From contig CBFFRQ010000049.1 of assembly GCA_965644315.1 (NCBI GenBank), positions 116,454-180,453 of the forward strand: 64,000 nt of DNA, given 5' to 3'. The position numbers and the translations under genes are program-made. How positions within the stretch are numbered: the stretch's first letter is position 1; the number at the start of each line of letters is the position of its first letter. Under the pieces are notes generated by a model. The model did not search any database and had not been told where the DNA came from. It worked only from the letters and a program-made list of their open reading frames with translations. This stretch comes from Caecitellus pseudoparvulus (taxonomy: Eukaryota; Protista; Bigyra: Bicosoecida). Positions 12,615 through 45,927 of this stretch are shown here, one piece after another.

Positions 12615-13379
12615 ATGGCTGCAGAGTCTGGAATGACATGCAAAGTGCTCGTCCTTGGTGACGCTGCCACTGGAAAGACCAGCATGATCAAACAGTGAGA
12701 CCAGCGAAACGGACATGAAACGCCGCGCGCTGAAAGCACCTATTCTCCACATCCCTGCAGGGCTGTGAGTGGAAACTTTACAGACTTGCACAAGCCAACA
12801 GTTGGCGTCGACTTCCACTTCAAACGGGTGCACCATGACGGAAAGACAGTCACTTTGCAGCTATGGGACTTGGCTGGGCAAGACCGCTTCGGACACATTT
12901 ATCGCGTGTACTACAAAGACGCCTTCGGGGCGGTGCTCGTCTTTGACCTGACAAACCCTGACTCCTTTGCGTCTGTTGCAAACTGGAAGCGCGAAATCGA
13001 CTCGAAAGTCACCCTTCCCAATGGAAAGCCGCTCCCAGTTGTACTCGCTGGAAACAAGGTAAGCACACCCTTTGGCGCCCATTCGCAAGTGTCACAACCA
13101 CACTCCTCATGCCTCCCACGCTCTCAGTGTGACCTTTCTTCGGCTTCGTATGACAAAGCTCAACTTGACGAGTACTGCGAAGCAAATGGTTTCGTCGGCT
13201 GGTTCGCGACATCCGCGAAGACCAACCACAACATCACCGAGACACTCTCCTCATTGGTTGGCCACATGTTGCAGCACGAAGATGCGTTTACAGAGCAACG
13301 CAAAGCTCAGGAGGAGTCGTCCAAGCTTGCAGTTAAGCTGAGCCAGCCGAAGGCTGAGGAAACTGGTAGCTGCTGCTAG
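12615..13379 (+). CDS. RAB32: Rab32/38-subfamily small GTPase; introns 12695..12760 and 13059..13127
   Basis: KVLVLGDAATGKTS, PTVGVDF, LQLWDLAGQDRFG, RVYYK, IDSKVTLPNGKPLPVVLAGNKCD, GWFATSAK and a C-terminal CC prenylation motif. Confidence 0.9.
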
Positions 13380-13399
13380 GGTAAGACGGGCGAAGCGAA

Positions 13400-23088: not shown

Positions 23089-23590
23089 ACACGAATGCAA
23101 TTCAAACCGAACAAAGCGCACACTGTGGGGAATCCCGCTTGTATGACGGCCTCCCGCATCCTGGACCACAAAGGAGCCCCATCAGCTTTGCTGTGGGCTT
23201 CCTGGCCTCTCAACAACTCGAGCTGGCCTTCGCAGCCCCCTCAAGTGCGGGAGGAGTTGGCCTGTGATGTCCTTGAGCGATGTTTTAGAAACTGGCGCAG
23301 CTCTAAGAGATGGAAACTACCAGGATTCTGCTCGGCATACAGACCCCTCCGTTCTCCTCGCCCGGTGGGGATTGGGAGGCGGCGGTGAGCAGTCTGAAAC
23401 GCTCCAGCTTCGGACGGTGCGAGATGTCCTGTACAGGGGCTACTGTGCTGTGGCTTGCTACCGGAAATGGAAAGCAAACATGCAATCCCGAACAAGACGA
23501 CGAGAGCTGCAGCGTGACAGGGTTTTGCGCTTAGTTGCAGGAGGTGTGGAGGGGGACGTCAGATTGTGAGCGCCTGCGTCGCAGCGACTG

Positions 23591-26500: not shown

Positions 26501-29038
26501 ATGCTGTCCCTCGCCCGCTTACGTGCTTTGCATGTTACACTCCTCCCGACGGAGGAATTCGCCAAAGGGTGGGTGGATCAGCCCCTGGACCCTGCCACGA
26601 TCGTAGCCGTTCACACTGCAAACCAACAATCTGCACTCAGGCCTTCGTCGGCAGGCAATCTGCAGGCCGAGGGGGCTTCGGCTGGGGAGCCCGCAGTGCC
26701 AGGTATTGCCAGTGGAGGACCTGCACGCACAGCGCTGGAAGTCGTGCAGCGAGTACTTCGGCGCCCTGCCTCAGCTCCAGGCGCCCTGCGCAGGCTGGCA
26801 AGCCGATACATCTCCTTTGGGGCTGAGAGAGGGGGCAGCAGGGGTGGGAGCAGGGGCAATTTTGTGAAGGATGAAAACGTTGGTGGTGGCGAAGATGAAG
26901 AGACTCTCGCCTTCCTCTTGATGCAGAGCCTAGCTGGTAGTGCGCAGGAGCCTGGCACGCCGCCTCGCCCAGCGCACCATGAGAGTGGGGGTCATCCTGC
27001 ACCTCCACGGTCCCCTGCGGAAGTCGTCGAGCAAGTGCTTCCTCTGCGAGTCCACATTCGACCCAGTGGGAAGGGCTTTGCGCGACGCACCCTCGCTGAG
27101 TGGGACGCTCAGCGGCCCAAAGATGCGACAGAAGAGTTTGAGCTGCCCCGCCCCATGACTGGATCTCGCTTGCTTCAAGAATACCGTGTGCCCCTCGAAC
27201 ACGAAGCTGTGCATCCACAAGGAAACATGTTTGGTCGTAGCAAGCAAGCGGCTGATGGCACTGGTGAGAGCGCCGGTCTATTGCCGTGGCTTGAGAGCGG
27301 AAGCGACGCTGGCTTGCACATGTCAAAGGACGATTTGCAGAGCACTCTGCACAGTGCGCCGGCTGGTGGGCATTCTCTGGTGCGTCAAATGGAGCGGGCA
27401 AGGCAAGCTGCTGCAGAAGCGAGTGGGGTGGGGCTGGATGGGCATGCCCCAGCCTGGGTGCGGCAGCGGTACAGGCGTGCAGCCCCCTCAGACTTGCACA
27501 CGTCAAGCACAGCGTATGGTCGGCACCCCCTTCCTCCGGGACAAGCACCGCACTTCCATTCCTCAAGCAGGCGAGTGTGGCCGCTGCATTCAACACACCA
27601 GCCCCCGCAGTTGAGGCAGTCCGACTTCGACGCTCCTCCGCTTGCTGGGACAGCAGAGGAGTTCTCGTCAAATACGCGGCAACGACTTCTGCAACGGCTT
27701 CCAAGTCTAGAACGATTGGTTGGTGAGGCGGGGATTGGGTACCATCCCGCCACTCATTCAGCCCGTGAAAAGGATGTTCGGGCGGCAATGGGGCGTCGGC
27801 GGCACCAAAATGCTGCCTTTGACACCTCCTCCGGCCCTGCTGCCCTTGCGGTGCCAGGTGGGGTGAATCTGTCTGAAGACTTTGGCAGTGAGGGCATTTT
27901 CACGCTTGGGGAATCGCCTGACTCCCCGGCCCATTTGCAGGCTGTGGACGAACAACTTCGCCAGTTCGGCACGAGCGCCAAAGCGAGGCACGTGATCGTC
28001 CCCTTGAACGGCAAATCGGGCGCCACGGTGGCATCCACTGTATCAGTGAAAGATTACCCCCGTGATTTGCTTGTGGGTCCATCTGGCGAGAGCGTGACTT
28101 CACTGGCGGGTGCGTCAGGGGCGCTGGATGGCATTGGAGCCCTCATCGTGCTAGCAGGTCAGGCAAGGTCCAACGGCAAGACAAGTGTGGCTACGACGCC
28201 ATCCCCTTATGATTTTGCGGAACTTCTCATGGGAGGTGTGCAAGCCCCAGGCGGTGGCTTTCCCGGCACACACGCGCTCAAGAGTGTGTGGCTCACGGAA
28301 GCTGTCCAGCACATGCTCGCTGCCAGTCGCGATCCGAGCCATGCAGAAACAACCGTCGATTTGCGCTCTGCGCTCCGAGAGTTCCTTTCTCAGGCACTGG
28401 GAGATGCTGCAATGGGTGCTCATGATCAGGGGCTCCTGGTGGTCGTTGGGCACAGTCTCATGAAGAGCATGATCGCTGCAGCCCAGGAGCAAGCACGCGT
28501 CCGCCTGTCGAAGCACAGGATGAGGACCCACCCCAGTGTCGCAAGCATGAAGAGCACAGCAAGTCTTTCATTCGGGGGTGACCTATACAGCTCACCATCG
28601 CTCAGCATGGGTTCACGTCAACGCAGCACCTCCCCGAAAGCGGCCCACGATGCCGCATGGCAGTCCGGCGTCAGCTTGCTGTTGACCGGCGGAGTCTCCC
28701 AAGAGTCCCTTCCAAAGCCAACGCCACCCACGGTACCATGGAGCCAACCACCGCCGCTGCCGCTGGGCAGCGGCCCATTGATGAGTATACGGTCGCTTCA
28801 GAGCGTGCGTGGGGACAAGCGGTCCAGGCGAGAACGGGCAGTGAGACCACCCATGTACGCCGACTCTGAAGACTGGAAAGACGCAGCAGGCGCAGACCAT
28901 GCTCATGCCGCAGGTCGAGCGGGTGAGGCTTTCCAGGTTCAAGGAGGGACCTCCGTGCTGCAGAGCAGGGGCGGGCGGGGAAAGCCGCTCGTCTCTGCCG
29001 GCCGCAAGGCGCTGTCTTCCAAGCTGCTGTCACCTTGA
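23591..29038 (+). CDS. Large uncharacterised, mostly low-complexity protein with a folded N-terminal region; the true start is probably in upstream exons (~23100-23600)
   Basis: 1815-codon ORF. The N-terminal segment (SVENLRKR...DWFIDS...FCDAIYVMVDLWADG...YARFLRGL) looks globular; the rest is rich in S, A, G, R and P. Confidence 0.7.
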   Translation: MRPNPHTPYLACSYSVENLRKREHMRYHPEILGLLDQWFSAAGEKSRSHGDVVWQDMYKAMHQRLSSILVSSTLSAAEKLHLFARDWFIDSKGRPERYFLSRRQFCDAIYVMVDLWADGIERSKYARFLRGLLRHVLDVARIVKAKRKAGKIDPNDVDGAAVWGRVRAAWQHGGAAALAAFLKGVKSKNIVSGSVAVQPSAREGAEASLRPGSQDASPEDEDRMAQVASGHLQELSAAGFAVGDSHSDADSVSSVRSANNFSRVSHRRELSRDGAVLPMAVSLEMLLGSAKVPAVASPSRRQRREETSEDAFPLRVGDTPKVLPPSHGPHQAGSLRASKPAGSRPSAPAPLPRRSRRSVNMLSSFGSQQPRSQGFTPLLDDDESGAARARNAHSFIIPRWQSGGKVIPGEDSTVHVLPGGQGQHGPVEGDSDSAPEQGPVRGESGATSKARTESAREESQGGSLGSQHLLVDSKDRGSSATSRLAPSPVNREVSPSGTRRRLIHGKRAMSRASTATSASASSTADAQPMMGSPSQDLFAGVDDEQAASQAVASRRKPRFRGRFRGTKAVELADGGQSEEAEEDTALPSEENGAVATPHAVQYDEHGARIRNLASQDAVRTRDMGGFGGEVPSDDDILLASSSGSSSSSVGSDGSDFAQQARQAALHGIRSGGKRGHHRRTSSVEAVQAAIARAANESGWSGLTRGFEGWGGDAGGEAVEWDFEQHEGHAGAAGSLLAGATHSRKASATLPSSPLHASPSPSKDDTRESFLVRMKRQQARLQEKARRRAAAAKHSDSAGALVRRTSRAAMLPTSHGSVMDKLLNGDAPDSGSVPAASTGGSLPWWASREALEDEALAVGAVGGSAEARRRVYSRGGRRVRDLEGPDAVVIPSYIVQPDIPDAVSVLSGVSSDDEVGEAVEALGALPRSIAVQSLSPAASALALALQHEGVPLPAADMKRLTTIALGLTAGGMLSLARLRALHVTLLPTEEFAKGWVDQPLDPATIVAVHTANQQSALRPSSAGNLQAEGASAGEPAVPGIASGGPARTALEVVQRVLRRPASAPGALRRLASRYISFGAERGGSRGGSRGNFVKDENVGGGEDEETLAFLLMQSLAGSAQEPGTPPRPAHHESGGHPAPPRSPAEVVEQVLPLRVHIRPSGKGFARRTLAEWDAQRPKDATEEFELPRPMTGSRLLQEYRVPLEHEAVHPQGNMFGRSKQAADGTGESAGLLPWLESGSDAGLHMSKDDLQSTLHSAPAGGHSLVRQMERARQAAAEASGVGLDGHAPAWVRQRYRRAAPSDLHTSSTAYGRHPLPPGQAPHFHSSSRRVWPLHSTHQPPQLRQSDFDAPPLAGTAEEFSSNTRQRLLQRLPSLERLVGEAGIGYHPATHSAREKDVRAAMGRRRHQNAAFDTSSGPAALAVPGGVNLSEDFGSEGIFTLGESPDSPAHLQAVDEQLRQFGTSAKARHVIVPLNGKSGATVASTVSVKDYPRDLLVGPSGESVTSLAGASGALDGIGALIVLAGQARSNGKTSVATTPSPYDFAELLMGGVQAPGGGFPGTHALKSVWLTEAVQHMLAASRDPSHAETTVDLRSALREFLSQALGDAAMGAHDQGLLVVVGHSLMKSMIAAAQEQARVRLSKHRMRTHPSVASMKSTASLSFGGDLYSSPSLSMGSRQRSTSPKAAHDAAWQSGVSLLLTGGVSQESLPKPTPPTVPWSQPPPLPLGSGPLMSIRSLQSVRGDKRSRRERAVRPPMYADSEDWKDAAGADHAHAAGRAGEAFQVQGGTSVLQSRGGRGKPLVSAGRKALSSKLLSP

Positions 29039-30895
29039 GCTTTGGTGATCCGCTGGCTCTGCTTCAGTAGACAAGGTGGATCGGTGTGAGATAATCTGTG
29101 GACCAAGGGCAGCCTCCTCGGCCAACTCCACCTGGGTTCGCTTCGTTGACAACCGGGATCGCAGAGCGCTCGGCGCGCGCTCGAGGCTGGAGATGACGTT
29201 GGAAACCTTCTCTTTGTTGTCATCCTTTGATAGCCAGGTGTCCAGTTGGGTCCCTACTTGATTCACGCAGGTGGAAACGAGCACTTGAAACGACCCAAGC
29301 ACAGACAAGGCGAGCAATGCAGCAGTTAAAACCGTCGGCTGACGCCGAACTAGGTAGGTGCACGATGCAGGCGCACACTTTTCGAAGTACCGGCTGTAGT
29401 CCGTCTTGAAGAAGTCTGGGTTGATCTTGATGGCATTTGAACCATCATCCGAGAAGAAGTCAAGGTTGCTGACGATGGGGCCGCCCAGTGGGGACGTTGG
29501 CAACGCAGCAGAGTCACCCACGGTGGAGACACCGCTCCGCAGCGGAAGGCCAAACTGCTGAGCAACGCTGGAGTTCAGCTCCACGAAGCCTTGGTATAAC
29601 GACTGCTGGAGGGGGCAGCCGAGGCCTCTGGGGCCGTAGAGAGGGCCGTACTTGAACATGTACTGTGGCAAACTGCGAACGAACTGCTGCTGGTCTGGGC
29701 ACAGCACCCGAAAGGGCTGCGATGGGAGGCCTGCTGGCAGGGGCTGGCCCGGGAAGAGTTCGTTGTGGAGGTGGAACGGGTCGAACCGGGCCTCAAAGGT
29801 GCAATTGCCTCGCGTCAGAGTGCTGTTGCAGTTGCAGCCAGGCGGGTTCGCCGTGCCTGGGACGAAACACACGTCCACTGCAGCAGTGATCCACTCATCG
29901 CCATAGGGAATGGGAATGGGGTTGTTCAGCGAGGTGCTCAGCCCGAGGGTCTGCTGGAAGGTATTGCTCTGCAGCATGAACCCAATAACGGCATCTTGCA
30001 CTGCCGTAGCTGCCGCAGCATCAAACTGCTCCACTGTGAGCAAGGAAAGGCCGAGGCTTGCAGACTGAATGCGCGGCTGCACGGCTGCCCACTGGAAGAA
30101 GAGGGTCTGGGCATACTTCGCCAAGACTGCTGCCAGCGTGGACAGACATTGCCGCACCAGATGTTCTGAGTGGGGCAAGAGGTGAGTTGTGTGGGCCAGC
30201 TCGCAGGTATCTTCGAAAGGGTTGGAGCCGTTGACTGCCTCTGCTCCAAACGCTTGCCCCGGTGCTGTCAACCCAAACAGGGTACGAAAGACGTTGTACT
30301 TGGGATCTGCGGCTCGTGGCAGATGTAGGGACACAGCCTTGCCCAGCCTGACAGGTTCTGATGAGGCACAACGGCATGTGGTGCCCAATTTCGGGGCGAC
30401 GTCTGGGGACCCGTCAAGCCCAAGGATGTACTGCCGGTAGCACTCGTAGCTGGTCAAGTGCGCTGGGCAGTGGATGTGCTCTTCAGCCGCACTCGCCGAT
30501 TCGGCAGCAGCTCGAGCTTCTGCTGAGGCATCTGAACTGAAGTACAGCGTCCCAGACACCGTGCGTTGCTGGGAAAGGATGACAAAGCCATATGCGACCA
30601 GCGCTGACAGCAGCAAAACGCCGAAACACATGGTCTTCCAGAAGCCAACTTGCACACGGTGCACATCCTCGACGTACACAGGTTCTCTGAACAGGTTCAC
30701 CGATCGCATCCACCAAATCCAGGGTGGGATGATGGCCTTGACCCTCGCCCGCACGCCGCCCACATTGGCGCCTCCTGCACCACTGTTGCGACCAGCCGCA
30801 GAGTCTGGCGTCGCTGGGCTCTGCGAGGCCATGGAGGGCGATGTCGCAACGGGGTTGATGACACTCCTTGAGGTGCTTCCCGATGAGCTGGCCAT
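29030..30895 (-). CDS. Uncharacterised membrane protein with two TM helices and a large Cys-rich loop (DEG/ENaC- or P2X-like topology)
   Basis: TM1 MCFGVLLLSALVAYGFVIL, a ~450-aa loop with many Cys and N-x-S/T sequons, then DYSRYFEKCAPASCTY and TM2 TVLTAALLALSVLGSFQVLV. Confidence 0.7.
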   Translation of the reverse strand: MASSSGSTSRSVINPVATSPSMASQSPATPDSAAGRNSGAGGANVGGVRARVKAIIPPWIWWMRSVNLFREPVYVEDVHRVQVGFWKTMCFGVLLLSALVAYGFVILSQQRTVSGTLYFSSDASAEARAAAESASAAEEHIHCPAHLTSYECYRQYILGLDGSPDVAPKLGTTCRCASSEPVRLGKAVSLHLPRAADPKYNVFRTLFGLTAPGQAFGAEAVNGSNPFEDTCELAHTTHLLPHSEHLVRQCLSTLAAVLAKYAQTLFFQWAAVQPRIQSASLGLSLLTVEQFDAAAATAVQDAVIGFMLQSNTFQQTLGLSTSLNNPIPIPYGDEWITAAVDVCFVPGTANPPGCNCNSTLTRGNCTFEARFDPFHLHNELFPGQPLPAGLPSQPFRVLCPDQQQFVRSLPQYMFKYGPLYGPRGLGCPLQQSLYQGFVELNSSVAQQFGLPLRSGVSTVGDSAALPTSPLGGPIVSNLDFFSDDGSNAIKINPDFFKTDYSRYFEKCAPASCTYLVRRQPTVLTAALLALSVLGSFQVLVSTCVNQVGTQLDTWLSKDDNKEKVSNVISSLERAPSALRSRLSTKRTQVELAEEAALGPQIISHRSTLSTEAEPADHQSSR

Positions 30896-31304
30896 CTTGA
30901 CTGCACCAGACGAGGAAGAGCAGGCGCCCGTGAGCCGACAACGGCTGCCCTCCACGCTCAGCAATTTCCGCACACCACGCCGCTACAAGCAGCAAGTGCG
31001 AAATGGATGTTGATGGTGGGGGCCTGGGCGCTGGCGGCCGCTGCTGCCACGTTGGTTTCATGGTAGGATGTTCATTTTGGTGTGCGGCAAAGAACTCTGG
31101 AAGGGCTTGCCAGCGCTCGCCGACAGGGCTCGGCGAAGCCTGGTCCATTTCAGGGGTCTATCCTGCCGACGCTGGCATGGAAGGCGGTCACAATCCCACG
31201 GCCGCCCGCATGAGCGAACTTCGTTATTCAATTCACCCTGTGGAGTGGGCCTTATATTTCCTGTGCACTCGGCTCAGCCGCGCACGCAGCCTTCGTGAAG
31301 CCAG

Positions 31305-31662
31305 GTCACCCTGGCGGGAGCGCCCACTAGTAATTTGCAAGTTCAAAGTGTTTTTTACTAAGTGAGAATCTTGTACTAGTGCGAAGACAATGGAAAAATA
31401 TCGTGCTAGTGTGAGCATGAGGGTCAGTGTGCACGCAGTCAGCTGTGCTAGTGTCAAGTCCGTGCTAGTGAAGTGCTTGAAAGCCGCAGAGGCGATGTGA
31501 AATACTAGTGTGCTTGGGGTTTGCCAAAACTGCACATCACCCTGTTCACTAGGGGTGGGTTGTGCGCTAGTGCGTCAGACCTGTCCAAAGCGTCGCTAGT
31601 GTGAGCGCGGTAGGCAGGATTCACGAGGGCCAGCTGTACTAGTGAGGTGAGCTGTACTAGTG
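31305..31662. repeat. Left imperfect TIR and subterminal CTAGTG array
   Basis: 11 CTAG between 31327 and 31660, 9 of them as CTAGTG. AGCTGTRCTAGTG occurs at 31441, 31632 and 31650. AGTGTTTTTTACTA-N6-AATCTTGTACTAGTG lies at 31347..31381. Confidence 0.85.
31307..31324 (+). repeat. 18-bp direct repeat, copy 1 (CACCCTGGCGGGAGCGCC)
   Basis: Identical to 38157..38174 and immediately followed by CACTA at 31325. Confidence 0.95.
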
Positions 31663-32183
31663 CAGCAGCAAGCTCGAGCTGACGTTGTGGGTGGAGCAGA
31701 CCTCTCTCGTACACACACCAATAAACACAATGTTGGTGCAGTCTTCGACTCTGTGTGCCATCTTCATCGTTGTCTCACAACTACCACGGCTTTTGTTTGG
31801 ACCATGATCATGCTATCGGGCTAGGAAGAGCCCTGCGTCGACTGGTGTGGCGTTTCGCTTCTAACGGGTTCTCCGCGCCTCTCCCATGCGGAACCGGGTA
31901 GGACTCCCACCAGGTCCCCGGCCCCTGGAAAACCTACCATGACTTATGCTTAGGTTTGGCCGGCCCTGGCGCCTTGTGGTGGGCTTGTGCTAGCGGTGTT
32001 GGACGGCTTCGCCGTGATGCAAGTGCCTGGCGCACGCAGCTTCGCAACGTTCGCTGCCACAAGACAGGCTCGGTGCATTGGCATGGATGAAATGTGAGGG
32101 AGGCCTGATGAAAGGTGGTCCATCCGTGCTGCAGCATGGAACTTCTCTTGTCAGCCAGCGTGTGGCGCAAAGCTCTCACAAGC

Positions 32184-35100
32184 TCAGTGCTGCCGCGCTG
32201 TGATGGTCGGCAGCCAGAAGAGAACCGGGTCACCATCCGGCTCCTCTGTGTAAGTGTGCCCCTCCACTACTGTGGGGTGAACCACCGCTGGAGCGATGAG
32301 AACACTGCCACCCACTGCGTTGGCTGGGGGGGCGACATCCAGCGGGTTCACGTACTTCCATCCAGCTATACATGCGTGGGCCTCGTCTGGGTGCAAGAAT
32401 GTCCCCAACAACACCACCTCCTCAATCGAGGCATCTTTCTCATGGTCCTGGGGTGCATCACCAACAAGAGCAGCGACAGCACGGAACAACCCACTCCCAA
32501 TGGCTGGCGCGGCTGCCCCTTGTTGCTGCTCCTCACGCACAACCACGAAAGCGGGGAAGCACAGCGTCGACGTGTTCCCGCCTGGGAAGCACATCAAGAC
32601 GGTGCTGCACAGCCGTACTTGTCCCACCATCCTATCTCCAGTACCAACTGTGCTGGAGACGCTCTGCAGCATGGTATTCACGTCCCCTAGAGGTAAGACC
32701 CCATCCAGAGCCATTCCGGCCACGCAGGGCTCCAAGGCTGCGCGGATTGTGCGGGCCAGCCCACTGTCTTCCCTGTCGAGCAGTTGCCAGACAGTGATTG
32801 GTGATCGGAGGACCTCGCGAGCCTTTGTTACAGGGGACAGGTACGGCATCTCTGGCAGCGGGCTGCCTTGCAGCAGGCAAGCAAGCTCTTCCCCAGCCAC
32901 CTGTGATGAGGCGCTCGTCACCCATGCCTCGCTTACCAGCATGTCTCGGCGGATGGATGCGTACGTCAACAACTTTGGCATATTGGCTGCCCCAAACGCA
33001 GAGTTGCACAGCTTCCACAGGCGGATGAGAGCGGGGTGCCGGCCCTCCCCGTTGTCAGTGTCCAGCGCTGCAACTACCCCAAAGCCTGCCACAGCTGCAG
33101 GAAGGTGCTGTATCTCGTGGGCCTTGGGATAGTGTGTGCTGGTGTCGCATGAAAAACTACTCCCTCCGGACTTGGAGGCTGCCTCTTGCACAAGCTCAGC
33201 GATCAGCTCCTGCGTGCCAACCATCCGAGCTAGCCAAACCTGCATGCCAAGCAGGGCCGCTTCGTCCAGTGTGTCTCGCACATACATGTATGCCTGTACT
33301 ACCAGTGTACAGTGACACAGCACTTGCACCATGGTGTGCAGCTGGGGATCAGCAATAATGTCTTGGTTGTGTCCGACGATGAGTGGCAACCACTGCGCCC
33401 TGCTAACGCGCTCGGCCGACCGCATCATACCCCCAGCATTCTGCCGCCATGGCAGTGCTCTTCCTCCATCAAGCCGAGTTCCGTTTATGGTCACACCCTT
33501 GACGGCCTCCCATCGGCTTTTAAGGAGTGCTTCCCTCGCAGCAAGTCCTGGACCGACAGTCATCGCAGCTAGGACAAACCTTTCGCAGCGGGCCGCTACA
33601 GCCCCCGTGTCGGCCGCGTGGATGGGATCTGGAGGCCTCAGGAAGCACAGCCGGGTTCCTAGTACCTTCTCAGCCGCTTCCCACGCGCTGAGTGCCCCTC
33701 TGCGATGTCCAGTGGCCGCGGCTGCCTCATCGCTGCCGGCTCCCTCTCCCCCTACCCTGAGCTGACAGTGTTTCAGCGATGCCAGCGAGGACAGCTGTGG
33801 ACCGGGGACACAGCGACACTGCACGCACCGCCGATGGAGCAAGTCAAACTGATCCCACGCTTCCACCATGTCCGCCGACAGCTGGATAATGCAAGGCATC
33901 ATCTGCACATACTCCACCAGCTGCCTCGGGCGACTGTGTGCGGTCACCTGTGACACCCTGTACCCAGCAGACTTCAGTGCAAGGGACTGCTCTGGAGTCA
34001 CCTCCTTGGGAATGCCGCCCATCTTCTGGATCGCGAGCAAGGGTTGGAGGACAAGGCTCAAAACCATGGACTGTGCTGCTTGTGCTGTGGCCGCAGCCGA
34101 AGTCAGGCCCGCCTCTCGCAGCACGTTGTCATCCTTGGGAAGTCTCTTTGGGCTCGGGGGCATGGCGAGCAATGTTGCCCTGTGCGCCTTGCGCATGGAG
34201 GCAGCATCCCCCGCAAGCGGCCAGAGCATCATGGGATACAATGCATGCTTCCCAGCCCCATCAGGGTGCACTTCGTCCATGAAAATGACCAGCGGCATGG
34301 ATAGCGCCCCGCGCGCCTTGGCGCGTTCAGCCGCATTGCGCAGGAAGACGCCATTGGATGGATGGCTCCATGTCTGTCCTGCCGCCCCAGCTTCGGATGG
34401 ACGGAACTGTTTTTCAACGCTGACCGGATCTCTGAGGCTACAATGGCCAACCTCGAGGGGGGCAGGGAGCGAGATCTCCCCACCGCCCGGTAGCTGCAAG
34501 GCGTCCTTCATGCGTCTCCAATGCGCTGTCGCCAGCCCGTCTGCAAAGTGGAACTTTTCTTTCACCTTCATGGCAGCGCTATTGTGTGCTGGCAGCTTAA
34601 GTGTTGATGGGAACCACTCTGGACTGGCGACGCCACCTCCTCGGTGAGGGGCGAAGTCCTCCAGTGGTACTTCGGCAGCCGTGCGTATAAGCACGTCCCA
34701 CAGTGGCATGGAAGGCACTTCGCACTGTCCACCTGCCAGTCCCTTGGGTAAAGGTACAGTGATGGAGATCGGGGAGGGGGTTCCTTCCGCGGCGATCTCC
34801 AGCAGCTTGTCGATGCTTGGCACCATGGGACACTGTGGAGCTGTGCGATGCTCCTGACGAAGAAGCACCTCAGAAGTCTTGATCGTCTTGTTGTGCTCCT
34901 TGATGATCTCCGTCAGCACACTCTTGCTGGCGTTGAAGCGCAGCAGACACTTGAGTATGGTCCGGCCCATGCCCCCTCCAATGCCTCCACCACTACCCGC
35001 ACTCTGTGCTGACAGCCGATCAGCGTGCGCTATGGCTCTGGCGACCAGCTCGGTGTGGCGTGGAGGGATGTGCTTTGCTGCTCCGGGTTGCTTTCGTGGT

Positions 35101-35447
35101 CCCCCGGTTGGCTGGGGAAGAGCTGGCTGTGCCATCTGGGCTTGGACGGTGGCGGCGACAGGCTCAACAACCAAAGCAAAGGGTGACCCCCCCCCTTGTG
35201 AGTGCCCGGCTGCCATGCGCTTGGCACCCACATCATGTTGAGGCCGCGCCGCGGCTTGCTGGTGGCGCTTGCGTTCAAGGCGAGTAGTTCGAGCTTCTGA
35301 AGCCAGCCGCTCCTGAACCTCACGAAGCCGTTGGACTTGTGCTTCTTTGTACGCCTTCATCCGCCTGCGACGACAATGGACCATATGGCCGCCAAGAGCT
35401 CGTTCGTCGTCGAACTCCTTGTTGCAGAGCTTGCAGCGGGCGCTCAT
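32184..35447 (-). CDS. Plavaka-type (CACTA/Mirage-related) DDE transposase with an N-terminal zinc finger, ~1087 aa, uninterrupted
   Basis: Zn finger CKLCNKEF...GGHMVHC, then PLVIFMDEV...LYPMML (D1), LSADMVE...RCVQC (D2 + CxxC), DPIHAADTG (DxxH) and YPKAHEIQHL...FG...DTDNGEGRH (E). This motif order matches Plavaka/CACTA transposases. Confidence 0.82.
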   Translation of the reverse strand: MSARCKLCNKEFDDERALGGHMVHCRRRRMKAYKEAQVQRLREVQERLASEARTTRLERKRHQQAAARPQHDVGAKRMAAGHSQGGGSPFALVVEPVAATVQAQMAQPALPQPTGGPRKQPGAAKHIPPRHTELVARAIAHADRLSAQSAGSGGGIGGGMGRTILKCLLRFNASKSVLTEIIKEHNKTIKTSEVLLRQEHRTAPQCPMVPSIDKLLEIAAEGTPSPISITVPLPKGLAGGQCEVPSMPLWDVLIRTAAEVPLEDFAPHRGGGVASPEWFPSTLKLPAHNSAAMKVKEKFHFADGLATAHWRRMKDALQLPGGGEISLPAPLEVGHCSLRDPVSVEKQFRPSEAGAAGQTWSHPSNGVFLRNAAERAKARGALSMPLVIFMDEVHPDGAGKHALYPMMLWPLAGDAASMRKAHRATLLAMPPSPKRLPKDDNVLREAGLTSAAATAQAAQSMVLSLVLQPLLAIQKMGGIPKEVTPEQSLALKSAGYRVSQVTAHSRPRQLVEYVQMMPCIIQLSADMVEAWDQFDLLHRRCVQCRCVPGPQLSSLASLKHCQLRVGGEGAGSDEAAAATGHRRGALSAWEAAEKVLGTRLCFLRPPDPIHAADTGAVAARCERFVLAAMTVGPGLAAREALLKSRWEAVKGVTINGTRLDGGRALPWRQNAGGMMRSAERVSRAQWLPLIVGHNQDIIADPQLHTMVQVLCHCTLVVQAYMYVRDTLDEAALLGMQVWLARMVGTQELIAELVQEAASKSGGSSFSCDTSTHYPKAHEIQHLPAAVAGFGVVAALDTDNGEGRHPALIRLWKLCNSAFGAANMPKLLTYASIRRDMLVSEAWVTSASSQVAGEELACLLQGSPLPEMPYLSPVTKAREVLRSPITVWQLLDREDSGLARTIRAALEPCVAGMALDGVLPLGDVNTMLQSVSSTVGTGDRMVGQVRLCSTVLMCFPGGNTSTLCFPAFVVVREEQQQGAAAPAIGSGLFRAVAALVGDAPQDHEKDASIEEVVLLGTFLHPDEAHACIAGWKYVNPLDVAPPANAVGGSVLIAPAVVHPTVVEGHTYTEEPDGDPVLFWLPTITARQH

Positions 35448-35738
35448 TCTGAGTCTTCTGTAGCGTGAGGGCACCGGCGGAGTTCCGTTGCTTGCGTTGG
35501 CGCCCCTACCGTACGTACGCAGCGCGCACAGCGAGGCGAGAACGCAACACAATGCCAGGCAGCCGTAGCATCTTCATGTTGGTCGTTGGTGTGTGTTGGG
35601 CTGTGGGCATTGAAGGCGCCTTGCAACCTCGTCCAGTGCATTTCCAGTCTGTCTCGACATTCCACCGTTGCATGTACTTTCAGACCCACCAAGTCCTCAG
35701 ATACGCTTTTTGTTGCACACCCACCCCAACCATTCACC

Positions 35739-37947
35739 ATGTCACTTCACTTTGATGAAATGGGCTCTGACAGCGAGGATGCAGGGGACACAACGGCAAG
35801 TGTCGTGGCTTCGTTAAGTATCGCCACACCCCTCGAGGCTGCACACCTCTTCAACCGCAGCACGGCTGCCAAAGCTGTGATGGCCGGGAAACGTCGACGG
35901 GATGTTGTGCTTTGGGCATCTCACCCTGGCAACTGCACTGGGTCCGTCGTTGGGGTGCCTGACGTTCTGGAGGGTAATGGTACGTACTGGTTCGCGCCAC
36001 AGGATCGACGCCCGTGCAGCGCCTCCCCACCCCACCCTAGCATCATGTGCAGGTGATGCCAACGCACTCACATGCCTTGATGACAGGGAGCTATTCGGCA
36101 CAGCTAGGGGCGGTTCTAGTGCTGCCATTGCGGCTCGTACGTACCTGCTCTGCAGTCACGGTAGCCACAGCGTTCTAACGGCCACTGCTAAGCTTCGTTG
36201 GACCGGACCAATCCCGCTCCCCTTCCCCAGAAGCCTTCGCCGCAAATACAATGGCGAGCTGCAGACCGATCAAGGCACCAAGGCCGCTTGACCTTGCTGA
36301 GAAGCTTGAATCGGCGAAGGAGCTGCTTGAGTCTATTGGCACGCCCAGCGAGAAACGTCTCATCGAGTTGTTGAACGAGGTTTTCGTTTGGAGCGCAAAC
36401 ACCATGTCCCTTGTCCAACTCTCACTTGGCCTGGGGCAATTCAGAACTTCACAGGTAGTGGGTATGGTTGGTCCACTAACGCAGAAGCAGGAAGCAAAGA
36501 ACTCCAAGAAACGTGGAGCTCGTGGGGGAGACCAGCTGGGTGAACTCTTAGAGCCCGTGGGGGGCGCAGACTCAATCCCATGGCCCCGAAAGTTCAGGGC
36601 AGAAGCCCGCCGCATCGTGGTCGACCTCATCCTCGAGAACCCTTCGTTCATCTTGGCAGACCCCGAGAACCTGGTAGACACACTACGAGCAGCCATCGAG
36701 GCAGTTGAGGCCGAGCAGAACGTTGCCCGAGAGGTGGCTGGAGCCACAGAGGAAGGGGGAGATGGGGTGCCGGTTGGAGCACAAGCCACGAGCCGGGCTC
36801 TAGACGACCCTAGGTTCTCAGCACCGTGGAAGTTCAAATGCCTCGAAAACGTGATAGCAGCAGCGAGGAAGGTTTCGATACAGAAGGAGCTTACCGAGCG
36901 GGGTGGCGTGCTTTGCGCGCTGAAGGACATGGCGAAGAGCAGCAAGAGTGCGAGTTACGCCGGGCTGAAGGCCGCCATGAGCAATGTCAGGAGCAAGTGC
37001 CGCGCCAAAATCACGAGGTGAGTGCCCAGAGGACTCCTTCCGAGTCCGTGGAGCGCAGCATAGCAGACTTCTGAGCATTGCGCAGTTCGGAATGCCTAGG
37101 AAAGTTCGAACCGTGGCACGAGATGCAGAGGAAGTACGAGCCAGTCCATGAGAAGTGCACCGGAGGTGCAAGCATTCAGCTTGACCACGACCCAGCCTTC
37201 TTCGAGGTGTCTTCCGAGGACCCTGAGTACCGCCACAGTTGGGTGCCCAAGGTAAGTATGTGTGTGAGTCTAGACCCGCACAGGTGATGCTGGGCCCGAA
37301 TGCTCCTTTCTCATGCATTCTCTTTGTGCCACAGGCTGAGAGGGGCAAAAAAAGGGCTGATCGATCAAGGCACCGCCTGTGCTTGCAGGAAGTCAACGTT
37401 GCCCGTGAGGCCATCGTCAATCATACCACCATCAAGGCTGTTTTCAAACGCCGGGGATCCGAGGACTCCAGTAGCGGCCCCCGTTTCGACCCCAGCTTCA
37501 GGCGTTTGGAAGCGGCGCTCAGTGGCCCAGAAGATGTGGCAAAAGGGGCCAGGATTGTCTTACGATGGATGGAGGCTGCGTACAACGTTGCTGTCGACTG
37601 CTTGAACGTGAAGAACAAGCAGTGGGTGACTGATTGTGGGGACCTGAGCAGCCTGACCGTTGACGACAAGGTGCGTGCGTGCTGTATGTTGGCCATGCTG
37701 TGGACGTCGTTACGCATGAAGCACCACGTACAGACGGAGATGGCCGTGCTTACGCACAAAATTGTGTCCAGGATAACCTGACATGCCCTCCCTCGACCTG
37801 GCGCCGAGCCATCCGTGCTGAAGCTACTTCATTGTTCTTCAGGTTGTCAAGGTGTGTTTCAATGCAATCGATTCACGGCAGACCGAACTTGTTGCGCTAG
37901 CGAAGAATGTACTACTAGGAAAAATGTCCAGCTGGGCGGTGCGCTAG
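35739..37947 (+). CDS. Transposon-borne spliced orphan gene, ~570 aa; exons 35739-35979, 36053-36136, 36231-37017, 37086-37251, 37335-37670 and tentatively 37843-37947 (alternative stop at 37781)
   Basis: Canonical donors (GTACGT, GTACGT, GTGAGT, GTAAGT, GTGCGT) and CAG acceptors join separate ORF-track fragments into one reading frame. No domain recognised. Confidence 0.65.
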
Positions 37948-38154
37948 TAGTGCGCTGGGCGGCCCTCCGTACTAGTAGCGCCTCGCCCAGCGAAATTTAC
38001 TAGTACCGAGCACAACCACCCCCGCTCACTAGTGTGCCTCTGGGCATGCATTCTCACTAGCATTGCAGTCGCCCCACTCACTTCACTAGCGCAAAATTGA
38101 GCTCTAGAAAAAAAACACTCTTCAAACTCTCCTTACAGAGCGCGCTCAGGTGAC
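37897..38154. repeat. Right subterminal CTAG/CACTAG array and imperfect TIR
   Basis: 9 CTAG between 37897 and 38107, three as TCACTAG. The reverse complement of 38084..38119 reads AGTGTTTTTTTTCTA-N6-AATTTTGCGCTAGTG, matching the left end. Confidence 0.8.
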
Positions 38155-38156
38155 GG

Positions 38157-38174
38157 CACCCTGGCGGGAGCGCC
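38157..38174 (+). repeat. 18-bp direct repeat, copy 2 (CACCCTGGCGGGAGCGCC)
   Basis: Identical to 31307..31324. Confidence 0.95.
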
Positions 38175-38220
38175 GAGCCCTCCGCTGCCTCTCGCTGACT
38201 CTTGCACGCCTTTGCTGAAC

Positions 38221-41200
38221 ATGGAGACCAGTCAGGCAGCTGGCTGTTGTGGCGGGTGCTGTGGTGCAGGGAAGCAAGACGAGTACACAGCCATGGACAG
38301 CACCGCTGAAGAAGGCTCAAAGTGCTGTGGTGGCTGCTGCGGGCCATCCCCCGCAGCACAGGTGAACATCGTCTCCCGCTTTCAACGGGCAGTGGCTCGG
38401 CTACAGGCAGTCATGAACTTCGCTGGTCGTGCCAGTGGTGGCGATAGTGCCTTTTACGTCGTGGCCAAGCTGTATGCTCATGAGGTGAGGGGCTGCTGGC
38501 AGGGCGCATGTCCCCGCAGTTTCCGCCCTGTGCTCGTGCTAGCTTCCCACGCCATTGAGCTCCATGCCGCTTGTGCGCAGAATGTGGACGCGGAGTTGTA
38601 TGACTACCACGATAGATTTCCGAACCAGTTCCGCTTCTACGCCCCCCAGGTGCGTTTTCTCAACATCCACTGCTGCCTGCTGGGTTCCATGTGTGGCTCG
38701 CGCACCAGGCAGGAGGCACGCACGCCGCCCGCCAGGCAAGCCTTCTCTGTCACCCCCCTCCCCTCTCCCTGACACCCCACCAGCTCATGAACGTCTTGCT
38801 GCATGGCGGCATGGCCGACTCTCAACTCCTGGCGACCTTCCTGCTGGGCCAGGCAGAGAAGTGCGTTTGGCCGGGAAGCGCTTGCGGTGCAGCGGCCACT
38901 GCACCGCCCCCGCCCCTCACAGGTCCCTCCTCTTCGCGCACCGCTTGCACTGGTTCCTGAACTCATATGCTGTGCGCACTGCGCCAGCCTTCACCAGCCC
39001 CCTGGTGTCCTCTGTCGCCCAGCAGGTGCGCCCAGCAGCCCCTGGCACAGGTGACCCCCTGGCTGACTTCTATGGCAACCCGTGCCCACTCACGCGCGCC
39101 ATCACCGCCACAGGGCGCACAGCCGCCCGGCGCTTCATGGACTCAGGCCCTGGGCGCTTGGTCTTGGCCGGCACGGCGGGGGCGGGCAAGTCCAGCATGC
39201 AGCTGGTGGCCAGCCCGACACCCGACGCAGCCGCCGCTGCTGGCGCCCAGGACACCCTGGCCTCCCAGGCACTGCTGTCAGACAGCAAGGGCACGACGCC
39301 AGTGCCGCCCCCCGCCAGTGACGCGTACCATGCCCTGGAGGGTAACGGCAGTGAGGAGGAGCAGCCGGTGACGCTGGTGGCGGCAGCGCTGCCTGCCCGC
39401 ATCGCGCCACGTTCCGCCACTGCCCGCCCCGCAGCCTGGTACGGCGCAAACCTCATGTTCTGGGATGAATTCCTGCAGCTCTCACGGCGGCTACGGGAGA
39501 CAGAGGCCGACCAGCGCAACCCCACCCTGCGCAGTCGCTTGGCGGGCATCTCCGCGGCATACCTTGGAGCCCATGTGGGGGACAGAGTGCAGGCGACGCT
39601 ATACGTGCCCGTGGGTGACCCCCATAACCGCATCGTGGCGGTGCACCCCGAGCACAGCTTCTGCTTCAAGACCAAGGAGCGCGTGCCGTTCATGGCAGTG
39701 CTGGAGGTGGTGGGGCTCAGCCCCGTCCTCTTCGGACACACCAAGGCCGCCGCCCGCCGCGCAAGGGTGGGCGCCTCCAACCTCGACGCGTACCTGGCTG
39801 GGCAGCAAACACATGCGCTGCACACGACAGCGGCATACGCGTCGGCTGCCCGGGCCCGGCGGCAGCGCAGGGGCCGCAAGGCCGCACCAGCACCAGCCCA
39901 CCCACCGCCCTCTGCTCCGGAGGCGCACGGGGCCTCCCGCTTCGCTGCGTACACGTGGGGCCTGGGGGACAGCGAGAGCAGCAGTGAGGAAGACGGCGAG
40001 GGCAAGCGCGACCGGGGGGAGTCGGGCAACTTCGCAGACATGTTTGCTGACGCCTCGGAGCGTATGCGGGAGTTGGGGCGAGCTGCGGGCGCCGCCGCAA
40101 CCGCCGCGTTCCAGGGCCTGCACATGCGTGCCCAGAGCGCGACGGGGGCGGCGGCGGAGGGCGCGAAGCGGCGGCGCAAGCGCAGTGCCCGGCAAGGCTC
40201 CGTGGCTGAAGCACTGCCTGACGGCGGTGCGTCGCCAACCAGCAGTGACGGCGGGGGCACCAGTGCCTCCGAGCGCGGGCATGTCGAGTTGATTTCGCCC
40301 CCTCGCCCGGCAGGAGGGAGCGAGGGGGCACGCGGCGGCGCCTGGGGCGACGCCAAGGGTACAGAGGCATCCCCTACACGCCCCATCCTGCCGCCCCGTG
40401 GCATCCGGCCCAAGCGCAGGGGCGGCGCAGCGCGCAAGCAGGCGCCACTCGCGGCGCAGCAGAGCCTGCTCCCCCCCACTCAGCACGACAAGCCGCCAGG
40501 CACCGGGCAGGGGCGGACCCTGAAGGCGCCTTCCCGAGCTCGAGCTGCGCTGGACCACAGCACGCGGTATGGCGTGGGCAGCAGTGTCGACCGTGCCAGC
40601 GCACCGCCGGACCTGGAGGAGGGGGACGGCGACTCCGTCTTCTCAGACAGCGACGGGCAGAACACGCCACCTGCGGCACAGGCTGTGCATGCAGTGGATG
40701 CCCACCTGCACTCGCCAGGCGCGCAGCGGCCGGGAGCACACCCGCTGGGCATGTGGCAGCACGGGCGTGGCGATGGTGTCGGAGCAGGCGCGTCCCATGC
40801 TGCGCCCACCTCCAGCTCGGCGGGGGAAACGCGCGCCTTGAAGGCGGACGCGCCCAGCCGGCGCCCTGCTGCTCTGCGCTCCCCCCCGCCCGGCATGACA
40901 GACTTCGAGGCCAATGGCGGCGTGTCAGACATCGACGAGGCCATCGCTGCCGGCGTGGGGGCAAGGCGAGGGGGTGGTGGTGCAGCTGCTGCAGATAGCC
41001 ACAGACCCCGTGGGGCGTCTGAGGTGGGGTCTGTGGTGGAGGAGGGGGGCGGGGAGGAGGGGCAGGTGGTGAACGTCGCCTTCACGCAGCGGTGGAAGGA
41101 CAAGGCCGAGGAGGTGCGGGCCAGCTCCCCCTACGGACACCACGAAGGCTGGCGCCTTGTGCCCGTCATCATCAAGTCCCACGACGACTTGCGCCAGGAG

Positions 41201-41965
41201 CAGTTCACATCCCAGCTGCTGCAGCAGATGGCAGGCATTTGGAAGGCGGCAGGGGTGCCAGTGTGGCTGCGCCCGTACGACATTCTGGCCACAGACGAGG
41301 ACGGCGGCATCATCGAAGCCATCCCCGACACGGTCTCCTTGCACGCACTCAAGAACGGCGATGACTCCTTCACTGACTTGTCGGACTGGTTCACGCGGCA
41401 CTTCCGACGTGGGCGCCACGGCAGCAAGCGGGACTCCCTGGCTCGGCAGAACTTTGCCCGGAGCCTGGCTGGGTACAGCCTGGCTTGCTACCTGCTGCAG
41501 ATCAAGGACCGCCACAACGGCAACATCCTCCTGGATGCCAACGGGCACATCATCCACATCGACTTCGGGTTCCTGTTCACCTCCTCCCCTGGCGGCAACA
41601 TGAACTTTGAGGCGGCGCCGTTCAAGCTGACGGCAGACTTTGTCAGCGTGCTGGGGGGCAAGGACAGCAGGTTGTTCAGCTACTACCGGTCTCTCTGCAT
41701 TCGAGGCTTCATGGCCCTGCGCAAGGCAGCTCCCAAGCTGCTGCTCCTCGTCGAGATGACGCTGGCCGGCAACAGCCACCTGCCTTGTTTCCAGAAAGGC
41801 CCCGCAGCGGTCATGTCCGAGCTGAACAGCCGCTTCGCGCCACACCTCAACACAGACTCGCAGGTCGCTGACTTCATGAACGGCCTCATCAACAGCAGCG
41901 CCGAAGCCTTCTCGACGTCCATGTATGACACGTTCCAGTACCTGAGCTTGGGCATCCGCGCGTGA
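38221..41965 (+). CDS. PI4KB: Phosphatidylinositol 4-kinase type III beta (Pik1-like); several 5' introns
   Basis: FYAPQ and LFAHRLHWFL (LKU region), FKTKERVPF, IIKSHDDLRQE, YLLQIKDRHNGNILL, HIDFGF and FEAAPFKLT. Confidence 0.93.
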
Positions 41966-41978
41966 GGTGGCGGCCGCG

Positions 41979-44900: not shown

Positions 44901-45927
44901 CGAGCGCTGGCTGGCTTCGGAGGAGGCGTCTGACATGCTGCTGTCGCCCTCTCCCTGCCCACTGGATCGTTTCTTGCGCACAGCAGAGTTCCACCGATTC
45001 TTCACCGAGTTTTCGCTGCGGCCAGGCAGCTTCTTGGCTATCTCACTCCAGCGGTTGCCTGCGTGGTGCGCAGTGGGTCAGTGATGGCCACAGCAGGCAG
45101 GGCAGGCACACATTGAGGAACAAGTGCAGCGAGGGCGAGCTGCCAAGCACGGCTCCACGAAACACAGGCAGCGCCCTGCCCTGCAGACGAGGGTGCAGCC
45201 TTCGGGCAAGAAACGCCCCCAGCATTGTGAAGCGCGCAGTGCTCCAAGGGCCAGGCTCACAGGCCATGCACCAGCGCGCACACCACCACGGTGCATCGCA
45301 CAGGGCAGCCTGCAGTCCAGGCTGTGGCTCTGAAGCAGTGCCTGGCACCTCTGCTCACCCCCACGGGGCCCGCAGTCAAGTGCAGCCTGGCTGGCGTGTG
45401 AATGCACAGCACATCGCGACAAACAGTGCAGCGCCGAACGCACCGACTCTGCGATGGCACTGTTCAAGGATGGCATCTTCCTCTGCTGTCCATGGCGTCT
45501 TGAGCAGGTTTGGGTCCAGGTGATTGAACCACCTCTCGCGACACTGCTTGCCGATCCGGCCTGGGATGCGAGCGGCGATGTCTGACCAACGCGTGACGCC
45601 CTCCTTGATGGCCAGCACGATGACCTCATCCTCCTCTGACGTCCATGGCCCCTTCACCAGCCCTGGGCGCAGCACCTGCTCAGCACGTGGCCCCGGGAAG
45701 GTGATGACTGCTGCCCAGTCGGGCTGGCAACGCGCATGAAACGCTGTCGCAGTTGTGCTCACCTTGTTCCATCGGTGCAGGCACTGGACATCAGTACGTT
45801 GGCCCTTCAGGTACTGATCGCTGATGGCTCGCCAATTCCGAGGCCCACAAGCTGCGACACCCTTCCGCAGCGCCTCGTCCTCCTGGGCCGTCCATTTGCC
45901 GTTGCCTCGTGTGTTGCGAGAGGCCAT
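41979..45927 (-). CDS. R1R2R3 (3R)-MYB transcription factor with a long Pro/Met/Ser-rich C-terminus; introns 45676..45762 and 45059..45443
   Basis: KWTAQEDE...[28 protein letters not shown]...GRIGKQCRERWFNHLDP...WTAEED...GNRWSEIAKKLPGRSENSVKNRWNS. Confidence 0.93.

Follow-up and report, generated by a model that had tools for sequence, protein, structure and literature searches.

A young, multi-copy DNA transposon with a putatively Plavaka-like transposase, a spliced partner gene and an aberrant copy in the marine protist Caecitellus pseudoparvulus

Transposons of the CACTA/En-Spm type encode Transposase_21 and DUF4218 domains, have CACTA termini and give target-site duplications (TSDs) of 3 bp; TnpD is the transposase, while TnpA binds to the subterminal repeats. 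The CMCT clade takes its name from CACTA/EnSpm, Mirage, Chapaev, and Transib, and RAG1 belongs to it. It has been defined by C(2)C and H(3-4)H motifs, TSDs of 2-5 bp and mostly 5'-CA..TG-3' termini (Kojima, 2025; PMC12730594). PlavakaA has the termini TGT..ACA and a 2-bp TSD, while PlavakaB has CATCA..TGATG and a TSD of 2-3 bp (PMC12730594). Plavaka elements have been reported from fungi, red algae, green algae, and an ichthyosporean. The giant Plavaka elements of red algae carry the accessory genes PAG1-3 (bioRxiv 10.1101/2025.02.11.637652), and both for these and for the accessory TET/JBP genes of fungal Plavaka elements a counter-silencing or chromatin-directed role has been proposed. No report of Plavaka in stramenopiles was found among the literature mentioning Plavaka. 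The element described here lies in a stretch of 64,000 nucleotides from the bicosoecid Caecitellus pseudoparvulus (contig CBFFRQ010000049.1, positions 116,454 to 180,453), below called the window. An earlier interpretation made from the letters alone, here the sequence-only reading, had regarded Plavaka as mainly fungal with poorly defined ends, a view overtaken by the host range above and by the termini and TSDs published in 2025.

The locus as a whole is best explained as one insertion of a recently active cut-and-paste family with a divergent Plavaka-like CMCT transposase and a spliced partner gene, the copy in the window being aberrant; the probability of this is put at roughly 80%. The element is of a kind that is already known (Plavaka-like, CMCT clade) and does not constitute a new class. 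Its main parts in the window are as follows.

31307..31324 (no strand): left copy of the 18-bp target duplication CACCCTGGCGGGAGCGCC, an exact repeat occupying the place of the terminal 16-19 nt (CCGTCACTGGAGGATGGCC)
31325..38156 (no strand): transposon body, 6,832 bp, without the left terminal inverted repeat, as judged by comparison with other copies
32184..35447 (minus strand): transposase gene, an intronless open reading frame (ORF) of 1,087 aa plus stop, with identical intact ORFs on contigs C60 and C102
35448..35738 (no strand): divergent intergenic region of 291 bp between the two ATGs, presumed bidirectional promoter, partly conserved in 68%-identical relatives
38157..38174 (no strand): right copy of the 18-bp target duplication CACCCTGGCGGGAGCGCC, an exact repeat, present once in the metagenome scaffold L059

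Copies were searched for in the window's own assembly of 30.6 Mb. Full-length copies are found on contigs C102, C69, C60, C15 (two), C63, and C19, and over 6.8 kb each shows 2-3 mismatches to the window copy (99.90-99.97% identity over the whole length); the few 1-nt gaps among the copies may be assembly errors. Right-hand parts of the element are also found on C51, C200, C36, and C27. These probably belong to the same loci as left ends situated at contig ends, since the flanking dinucleotides are shared. In all, the element occupies about eight loci in the genome, with unrelated flanks. Intact transposase frames of 1,122 codons are present in three of the copies (window, C60, and C102), and these ORFs are identical.

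A gene for a PI4-kinase adjoins the element, and through it a public metagenome scaffold of 139 kb (L059) was reached that is collinear with the window and 99.25-99.3% identical to it on both sides of the element. Window 22011-31324 corresponds to L059 1-9314, and window 38157-45000 to L059 9297-16140. The element is precisely absent from L059, and the 18-mer CACCCTGGCGGGAGCGCC occurs there a single time. This empty site shows that the insertion in the window is recent and that the 18 bp are duplicated target DNA. In contigs of three other public runs the match begins exactly at 38157 and continues for 268-3,059 nt into DNA that does not belong to the element; the public runs were consulted as contigs, and the placement covered window 32401-38400. 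Contig C123 of the window's assembly contains an allelic right flank (L053, C123:46024-48567, corresponding to window 38157-40700) with 26 mismatches in 2,544 nt, and the first base of the 18-mer is exactly where this haplotig ends. For the left flank the assembly contains no such second version. Judging from C123, the host is apparently diploid or of higher ploidy, with a heterozygosity of about 1%.

The element is thus a very young, multi-copy cut-and-paste DNA transposon and the window insertion is polymorphic, given the near-identical copies at about eight loci and the empty site in a related strain. This agrees with the sequence-only reading, which had proposed a young transposon of autonomous type with a partner gene, to be checked by searching the genome for further copies and by looking for an empty site. 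Both searches were productive: in addition to the copies at about eight loci they gave an internally deleted derivative on contig C18, seven transposase-less relatives, and L059, where the element is lacking and the 18-mer is single. The empty-site junction as an exact pattern had no match in the JGI metagenomes, and exact searches of public contigs with the transposase and with two ORFs from the flanks were likewise without a match. Summed over contigs, the depth of the element relative to the single-copy flank was lowest in run X3 (about 1.3x), intermediate in metagenome X4 (about 2x), and highest in run X6 (about 20-30x). Depth is not the same as copy number, but such unevenness would be expected if the element had recently multiplied in certain strains and not in others.

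Canonical copies have a length of 6,851 bp and all share the termini CCGTCAC...GTGACGG. All copies other than that in the window reach 19 nt further to the left; they begin with CCGTCACTGGAGGATGGCC followed by CACTAG, and end with CAGGTGACGG. The canonical left end could be read in eight of these other copies. Internal to the 7-nt inverted repeat CCGTCAC/GTGACGG, a loose inverted similarity extends over about 60 nt. At the three loci where both flanks are available (C102, C69, and C18) the target duplications are 2 bp long (CG, AT, and AT), and no reading as a 3-bp TSD fits these loci. Four more flanks known from the left or the right only pair as CA, TT, GC, and AT. An inverted-repeat search to delimit metagenomic relatives was uninformative because the terminal inverted repeats (TIRs) are only 7 nt long.

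Next to the termini are arrays of a short motif. RCTAGTR has 28 matches in the window, compared with a chance expectation of about 11, and 28 was reached in none of 100 shuffles. As many as 24 of the 28 are located in 31325-31662 and 37943-38090, so the repeat-rich ends noticed in the sequence-only reading are real. When four elements that are 68% identical overall are compared (alignment A2), the RCTAGTG motifs of the right-end array are invariant and the spacers have diverged; since the motifs stay invariant while the spacers diverge, the arrays are candidate protein-binding sites. CACTA termini were considered and rejected, as CACTAG is the first subterminal motif and lies 19 nt inside the canonical end.

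31325..31662 (plus strand): left subterminal array, about 10 RCTAGTG motifs in one orientation, recognised by clustering relative to shuffles
37897..38100 (minus strand): right subterminal array, with motifs as on the left but for the most part inverted (CACTAG / ACTAGTA), invariant among four 68%-identical elements
38150..38156 (no strand): right terminal inverted repeat GTGACGG, which pairs with the canonical left CCGTCAC, from copy comparison

The copy in the window departs from this pattern. In the assembly sequence it begins at the first internal CACTAG (31325), and the first 16-19 nt of the left end are gone. The limits originally suggested, 31305-38174, bracket the perfect 18-bp direct repeat (0.02 matches expected by chance), while the element itself is 31325-38156; and as its left terminus is missing, the description "apparently complete" does not hold. 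The last three nucleotides of the 18-mer, GCC, are common to the 18-mer and the canonical left end. On the right-hand side the ATG of the PI4-kinase lies 64 bp after 38157. An 18-bp TSD as a trait of the family was rejected, given the 2 bp of the canonical copies, and the window copy appears to be the product of an aberrant event.

Two routes to this structure may be envisaged. The transposase could have integrated the element from an internal pseudo-end, or in a one-ended reaction that was completed by host repair. Alternatively, a normal insertion with a CA duplication could have been followed by a break at the left end, mended by templated end joining. In its explicit form the second route would start with a 2-bp (CA) insertion and an abortive excision or break, after which joining of the polymerase-theta type copied 16 nt of the right flank and rejoined at GCC. 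The 18-mer does start with CA, and 2 bp of a normal TSD together with a templated patch of 16 nt add up exactly to the sequence seen; the GCC in which the 18-mer ends, and which the canonical terminus also has, is in agreement with such rejoining, and the left flank CAGGT resembles the right tip of the element (CAGGTGACGG), providing microhomology. However, a microhomology of 3 nt is met by chance about once in 64 cases, a start exactly at the first CACTAG fits an internal pseudo-end just as well, and the empty site in L059 fits aberrant integration and later repair equally well. Repair after integration is a credible account of the 18-bp repeat, although we consider it less likely than not. 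By either route, the window copy is probably immobile in cis because the left inverted repeat is missing, and with both genes intact it could supply both proteins in trans. Aberrant products of such transposases are rarely met in nature, and the truncated copy with its 18-bp duplication would be one of them.

The transposase frame is open without interruption from 32184 to 35552 on the minus strand, with the first ATG at 35447. An uninterrupted ORF of about 1,087 aa with a zinc finger and a second gene head-to-head at a distance of 291 bp were both features of the sequence-only reading, and both are borne out, the distance to the ATG at 35739 on the plus strand being exactly 291 bp. The protein contains the following regions.

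35373..35435 (minus strand): N-terminal C2H2-type zinc finger CKLC...HMVH, residues 5-24 (Pfam zf-C2H2_6, E 0.006, below threshold)
32835..34385 (minus strand): DDE catalytic core, residues 355-871, with D391, D526, and E801 as candidate catalytic residues, invariant in five paralogous families

The proteins P0004 and P0010, like the paralogous family on L044, have a C2H2 finger in the corresponding position. In an alignment of five paralogous families the motifs FxD (D391), LSxDxxEAW (D526), and CxxC (CVQC 541-544) are invariant, as are RPxDxxH, YPKAH...H (H777-x3-H781), and DxDxGE..H...N (E801). Direct searches gave little. A Pfam hmmscan of the transposase returned no family above threshold; there was no match to PF18759 at E up to 10, and none to Transposase_21 or DUF4218. 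Nor do the Pfam models for Plavaka and Transposase_21 pick up anything else in the genome. A word-indexed homologue search with the transposase core gave nothing at E 1e-3, a similar search with the fungal Plavaka protein P0010 found only P0010 itself at a strict cut-off, and a sequence search of the PDB with the transposase profile gave nothing meaningful.

A profile of the five families (A1) was more sensitive. Among 1.84 billion representative proteins it found only 12, and the clade in the window is thus nearly absent from this collection. The closest of the 12 are from marine metagenomes that also contain the host, and one of the contigs is 99% identical to a family-D copy. Four more distant matches carry the Pfam Plavaka domain: P0010 from the yeast Sporobolomyces (103 bits), P0008 (46 bits), P0011 (29 bits), and P0004 (22.7 bits, just under the cut-off). 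The profile reaches P0010 at E 5e-7 and P0008 at E 1e-7 in the 1.84 billion proteins. When A1 was aligned by hhalign with P0010 and P0008, two sequences that are both above the Pfam cut-off, the probability was 98.4% (E 1e-14, 426 columns), and D391, D526, C(2)C, H(3)H, and E801 were in register. Among the language-model neighbours in the ESM Atlas, Plavaka clusters account for 16 of 30 and Transposase_21 clusters for 3 of 30. P0004 is a protein of 1,043 aa on a 7.4-kb metagenome contig from ENA (L058) that matches the family profile with E 3e-41, its neighbouring ORFs being without Pfam domains. Among the relatives that probably come from another organism it is the closest, and it bridges the window clade and the Pfam Plavaka proteins.

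The fold was compared with known structures by means of a predicted model. An AlphaFold model of residues 340-880 had a poor mean pLDDT (predicted local distance difference test score) of 55.6. With this low-confidence model as query, the top 41 Foldseek matches in the PDB were all RAG1, Transib or BbRAGL (the RAG-like protein of amphioxus), with a best E of 9e-4 and a template-modelling (TM) score of about 0.24. VIA-align gave Z-scores of up to 10.5 over RAG1 residues 569-959, at a root-mean-square deviation of 8 Å for 265 residues, again from the low-confidence model. In the aligned ranges D391 is near D600 of RAG1, and H777/H781/E801 are near H937/H942/E962, so that a residue-level match to the RAG1 active site is suggested by the model. 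A shape search of the Atlas returned Plavaka and Transposase_21/DUF4218 clusters.

Taken together, these comparisons suggest that the transposase is a very divergent Plavaka-like DDE enzyme in the CMCT clade, not a plain member of Plavaka. The original label, Plavaka/CACTA-like, thus holds in part: the family profile matches Pfam-positive Plavaka proteins and the predicted fold may resemble RAG1/Transib, but there is no Pfam match to Plavaka or Transposase_21 and the termini are not CACTA. As to the check by profile and structure that had been proposed, the Pfam profiles gave no match, hhalign gave a match to Plavaka, and Foldseek, with a low-confidence model as query, ranked RAG1/Transib first.

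It has to be considered whether the transposase instead belongs to a separate, unnamed CMCT lineage, sister of Plavaka or Mirage, the likeness to Plavaka being nothing but the common CMCT core. The Pfam Plavaka model finds no match, even genome-wide, and CCGTCAC..GTGACGG fits neither PlavakaA nor PlavakaB. The small number of matches (12 in 1.84 billion proteins), most of the close ones apparently from the same organism in marine metagenomes, would be expected of such a lineage, and the Atlas neighbours do include Transposase_21 clusters. On the other hand, all distant profile matches that have any Pfam domain have Plavaka and none has Transposase_21, the hhalign probability of 98.4% extends over the whole core, including the part under the Plavaka domain, and Plavaka forms the majority of the Atlas feature neighbours (16/30). 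A separate lineage therefore deserves real weight, with the odds somewhat against it.

The partner gene is transcribed away from the transposase gene and appears to be spliced. Its model was derived from an alignment with a sister element on contig C44 and two short relatives (68% nucleotide identity), in which coding blocks were sought between conserved GT...AG.

35739..35979 (plus strand): partner exon 1, with the ATG at 35739; GT-AG model with consistent phases, 37% protein identity to the C44 copy
36053..36136 (plus strand): partner exon 2, 84 nt, the least certain exon; the acceptor of the next intron is shifted relative to relatives
36231..37017 (plus strand): partner exon 3, 787 nt, with an all-helical structure predicted; relatives are 46-50% identical in protein, the donor GTGAGT is conserved, dN/dS 0.50
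37086..37251 (plus strand): partner exon 4, 166 nt, the best conserved of the five; relatives are 64-70% identical in protein, dN/dS 0.18
37335..37781 (plus strand): partner exon 5, with the stop TGA at 37779-37781; 54-63% protein identity, dN/dS 0.37

The introns are 73, 94, 68, and 83 nt long, and the coding sequence is 1,725 nt (574 aa); the phases agree with the conserved frame. Exons 1 and 2 are the least certain part of the model. Between the window and C44 copies the ratio of nonsynonymous to synonymous substitution rates (dN/dS) is 0.41 for the partner as a whole (dS 0.78), and for the transposase it is 0.29 (dS 0.35; 82% identical protein, 86% identical nucleotides). Judged by these ratios, both are real genes under purifying selection. 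A 267-nt contig of run X9, which is guessed to be RNA, is 100% identical to window 37359-37625 in the last exon of the partner, and the X9 contigs do not cover the transposase; possibly this is a sign of transcription of the partner. The seven short transposase-less relatives share an in-frame stop in partner exon 3, and the C18 derivative also has stops. The partner is not needed in cis, since the short relatives with this stop still reached seven copies.

The searches for a function of the partner were done exon by exon. Pfam found no domain in any exon, including no oxygenase, methylase, SET or other enzymatic domain, and a sequence search of the PDB with partner profiles gave nothing meaningful. 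For exon 3, the feature search of the Atlas returned only weak helical-repeat look-alikes with recognition below a useful level, and the AlphaFold model (pLDDT 41.7) was unusable. Two other families, known from metagenomic copies, also have a divergent upstream gene, of 427 and 453 aa, and these two are mutually homologous (E 8e-13). The partner in the window had no detectable similarity to either in BLASTP (E 0.24 and 0.73) or hhalign (0.3%).

By analogy with TnpA of CACTA elements, the partner may serve the element as an accessory protein, either by binding to the subterminal motifs or by helping the transposase, a proposal that we would offer only tentatively and at rather less than even odds. 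The main alternative is that of a factor directed at chromatin or counteracting silencing, as proposed for TET/JBP in fungal and PAG1-3 in red-algal Plavaka elements. Such accessory genes are documented in Plavaka elements, exon 3 resembles helical repeats and no known DNA-binding fold, and seven transposase-less relatives with a premature stop in the partner were able to multiply. Conversely, no enzymatic domain (oxygenase, methylase, SET) is seen in any exon, and the conserved subterminal motifs need some binding protein; a counter-silencing function is considered rather unlikely. That the 6.8-kb unit is a domesticated or single-copy, non-mobile host locus, which the sequence-only reading had named as the finding that would speak against a transposon, is for practical purposes ruled out by the near-identical copies with unrelated flanks at about eight different loci, and by the syntenic site in a 99.3%-identical strain that precisely lacks the unit.

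From what is known of the clade, the proposed mechanism would be as follows. The transposase would bind the ends of the element, probably via its N-terminal zinc finger and the subterminal motifs. An active site of D391, D526, and E801, stabilised by a zinc site of C(2)C and H(3)H, would excise the element, and the enzyme would then join both 3' ends to the target DNA with a 2-bp stagger. The partner would read the RCTAGTG arrays or assist the transposase in some other way, as TnpA does in CACTA.

The same genome contains several related elements. The derivative on C18 is internally deleted, about 2 kb long and 81-88% identical to the element. The sister element (C44:140500-152350; L014, L017, and L026) is about 11.9 kb long and has about 5 kb of extra DNA between the transposase and the left end; its ends and partner are only 68% identical to those of the window element. 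Seven copies of about 3.4 kb, which are 97-100% identical to each other, have ends and partner of the C44 type and no transposase, and the C44 element looks like their autonomous source. The window and C44 elements have a dS of 0.35 in the transposase and of 0.78 in the partner, which suggests that families have swapped modules (transposase versus ends plus partner). The genome also contains at least eight other families whose transposases are of this clade and 24-29% identical to the window protein; their frames measure about 943-1,240 aa and are mostly intact, and several of these families are multi-copy.

Contigs with further families (loci L044-L050): C68, C147, C161, C149, C141, C30, C190, C43, C12, C18, C40, C111, C133, C50, C169

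The copy on C19 (L008:5379-6881, L013:1-1495) is interrupted near the 5' end of its transposase gene, at the point equivalent to window 35199, by another insertion of about 4.4 kb. The nested sequence has the inverted ends TAGGTCTCGTGAAACC, is flanked by the 5-bp direct repeat CTTGT, and contains one ORF with a DDE_Tnp_4 domain of the PIF/Harbinger type (30 bits). The end of contig C51 coincides exactly with this insertion point. Elsewhere in the window, 13000-16000 is a low-GC island (46-51%, compared with about 60% around it) where the AT skew changes.

Several observations weigh against the explanation preferred here, a recently active family with a divergent Plavaka-like transposase. A search of the whole genome in six frames with PF18759 gave no match at E up to 10. 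The termini match neither TGT..ACA nor CATCA..TGATG, nor the usual CA..TG. The structural model is poor (pLDDT 55.6, TM about 0.24 to RAG1), and the equivalence with RAG1 residues is read from aligned ranges only. The partner has no domain, its model has a pLDDT of 41.7, and it has no detectable likeness to the partners of other families. The most far-reaching combination of the parts would be an undescribed deep CMCT branch, sister to Plavaka and currently active in a marine protist. This branch would be set apart by its ends (CCGTCAC..GTGACGG, with RCTAGTG arrays) and by a conserved accessory protein that has a new fold and is encoded by a spliced gene; it would have exchanged modules, and in the window it would have left a copy integrated by a RAG1-like transposase from a pseudo-end or one end. 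That all of this should hold jointly appears doubtful, though well short of implausible.

What is new is a very divergent and apparently active lineage in a marine protist, with a terminus and motif arrays of its own, an orphan spliced partner and a documented aberrant insertion. It offers a fully delimited, apparently live member of the RAG1-related CMCT clade in a small protist genome (30.6 Mb). The ends, TSD, motif arrays, intact transposase, partner, non-autonomous derivatives, and empty site are all known, which is enough for the design of a transposition assay or a genetic tool. The Pfam models at present overlook whole lineages of this CMCT-type clade. The understanding of how such elements work is not changed; what is gained is a sound annotation and a range that is modestly wider than before.

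With Mirage of the CMC superfamily the element shares the 2-bp TSD and the CMC/CMCT clade; no profile or Atlas match pointed to Mirage, with which no direct comparison of reference sequences was made. Transib and RAG1 (6pqn, 6cik, and others) are the best and almost the only structural matches, and they have the same order of D, D, C(2)C, H(3-4)H, and E. However, the identity is about 10% in a comparison that uses a low-confidence model, the Transib/RAG TSD is 5 bp, and the window element has neither heptamer-nonamer ends like those of recombination signal sequences nor a RAG2-like partner.

There are also similarities to CACTA/En-Spm. Both have short TIRs, inside which lie arrays of short subterminal motifs that are oriented oppositely at the left and right ends, both encode two proteins, and the transposases are of the same clade, with Transposase_21 clusters among the results of the Atlas shape search. 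The window family differs in having no CACTA termini, a TSD of 2 and not 3 bp, and no match to Transposase_21/DUF4218. Furthermore, its proteins are encoded by separate divergent genes, while those of CACTA are made by alternative splicing of one transcript.

Compared with the CMCT clade in general, the element has D391, D526, CVQC at 541-544, H777-x3-H781, and E801, and its 2-bp TSD is within the range of 2-5 bp. Unlike most members, it has termini that start with CC and end with GG, but the definition speaks of "most cases" and leaves membership possible. The closest likeness is to Plavaka. Its DDE core aligns collinearly with that of Pfam-positive Plavaka proteins (hhalign 98.4%), the block YPK.H...H...FG...DT..GE..H...N is in common, and both have a 2-bp TSD, an N-terminal C2H2 finger and an accessory gene. 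In contrast to Plavaka, the window transposase is missed by the Pfam model, the termini are CCGTCAC..GTGACGG, and the accessory gene is a spliced orphan without a TET/JBP, methylase, SET or ParB-like domain. As the motifs, homology, and TSD agree with Plavaka while the termini and the Pfam threshold do not, the element would be neither PlavakaA nor PlavakaB, and is on sequence grounds best described as Plavaka-like within CMCT.

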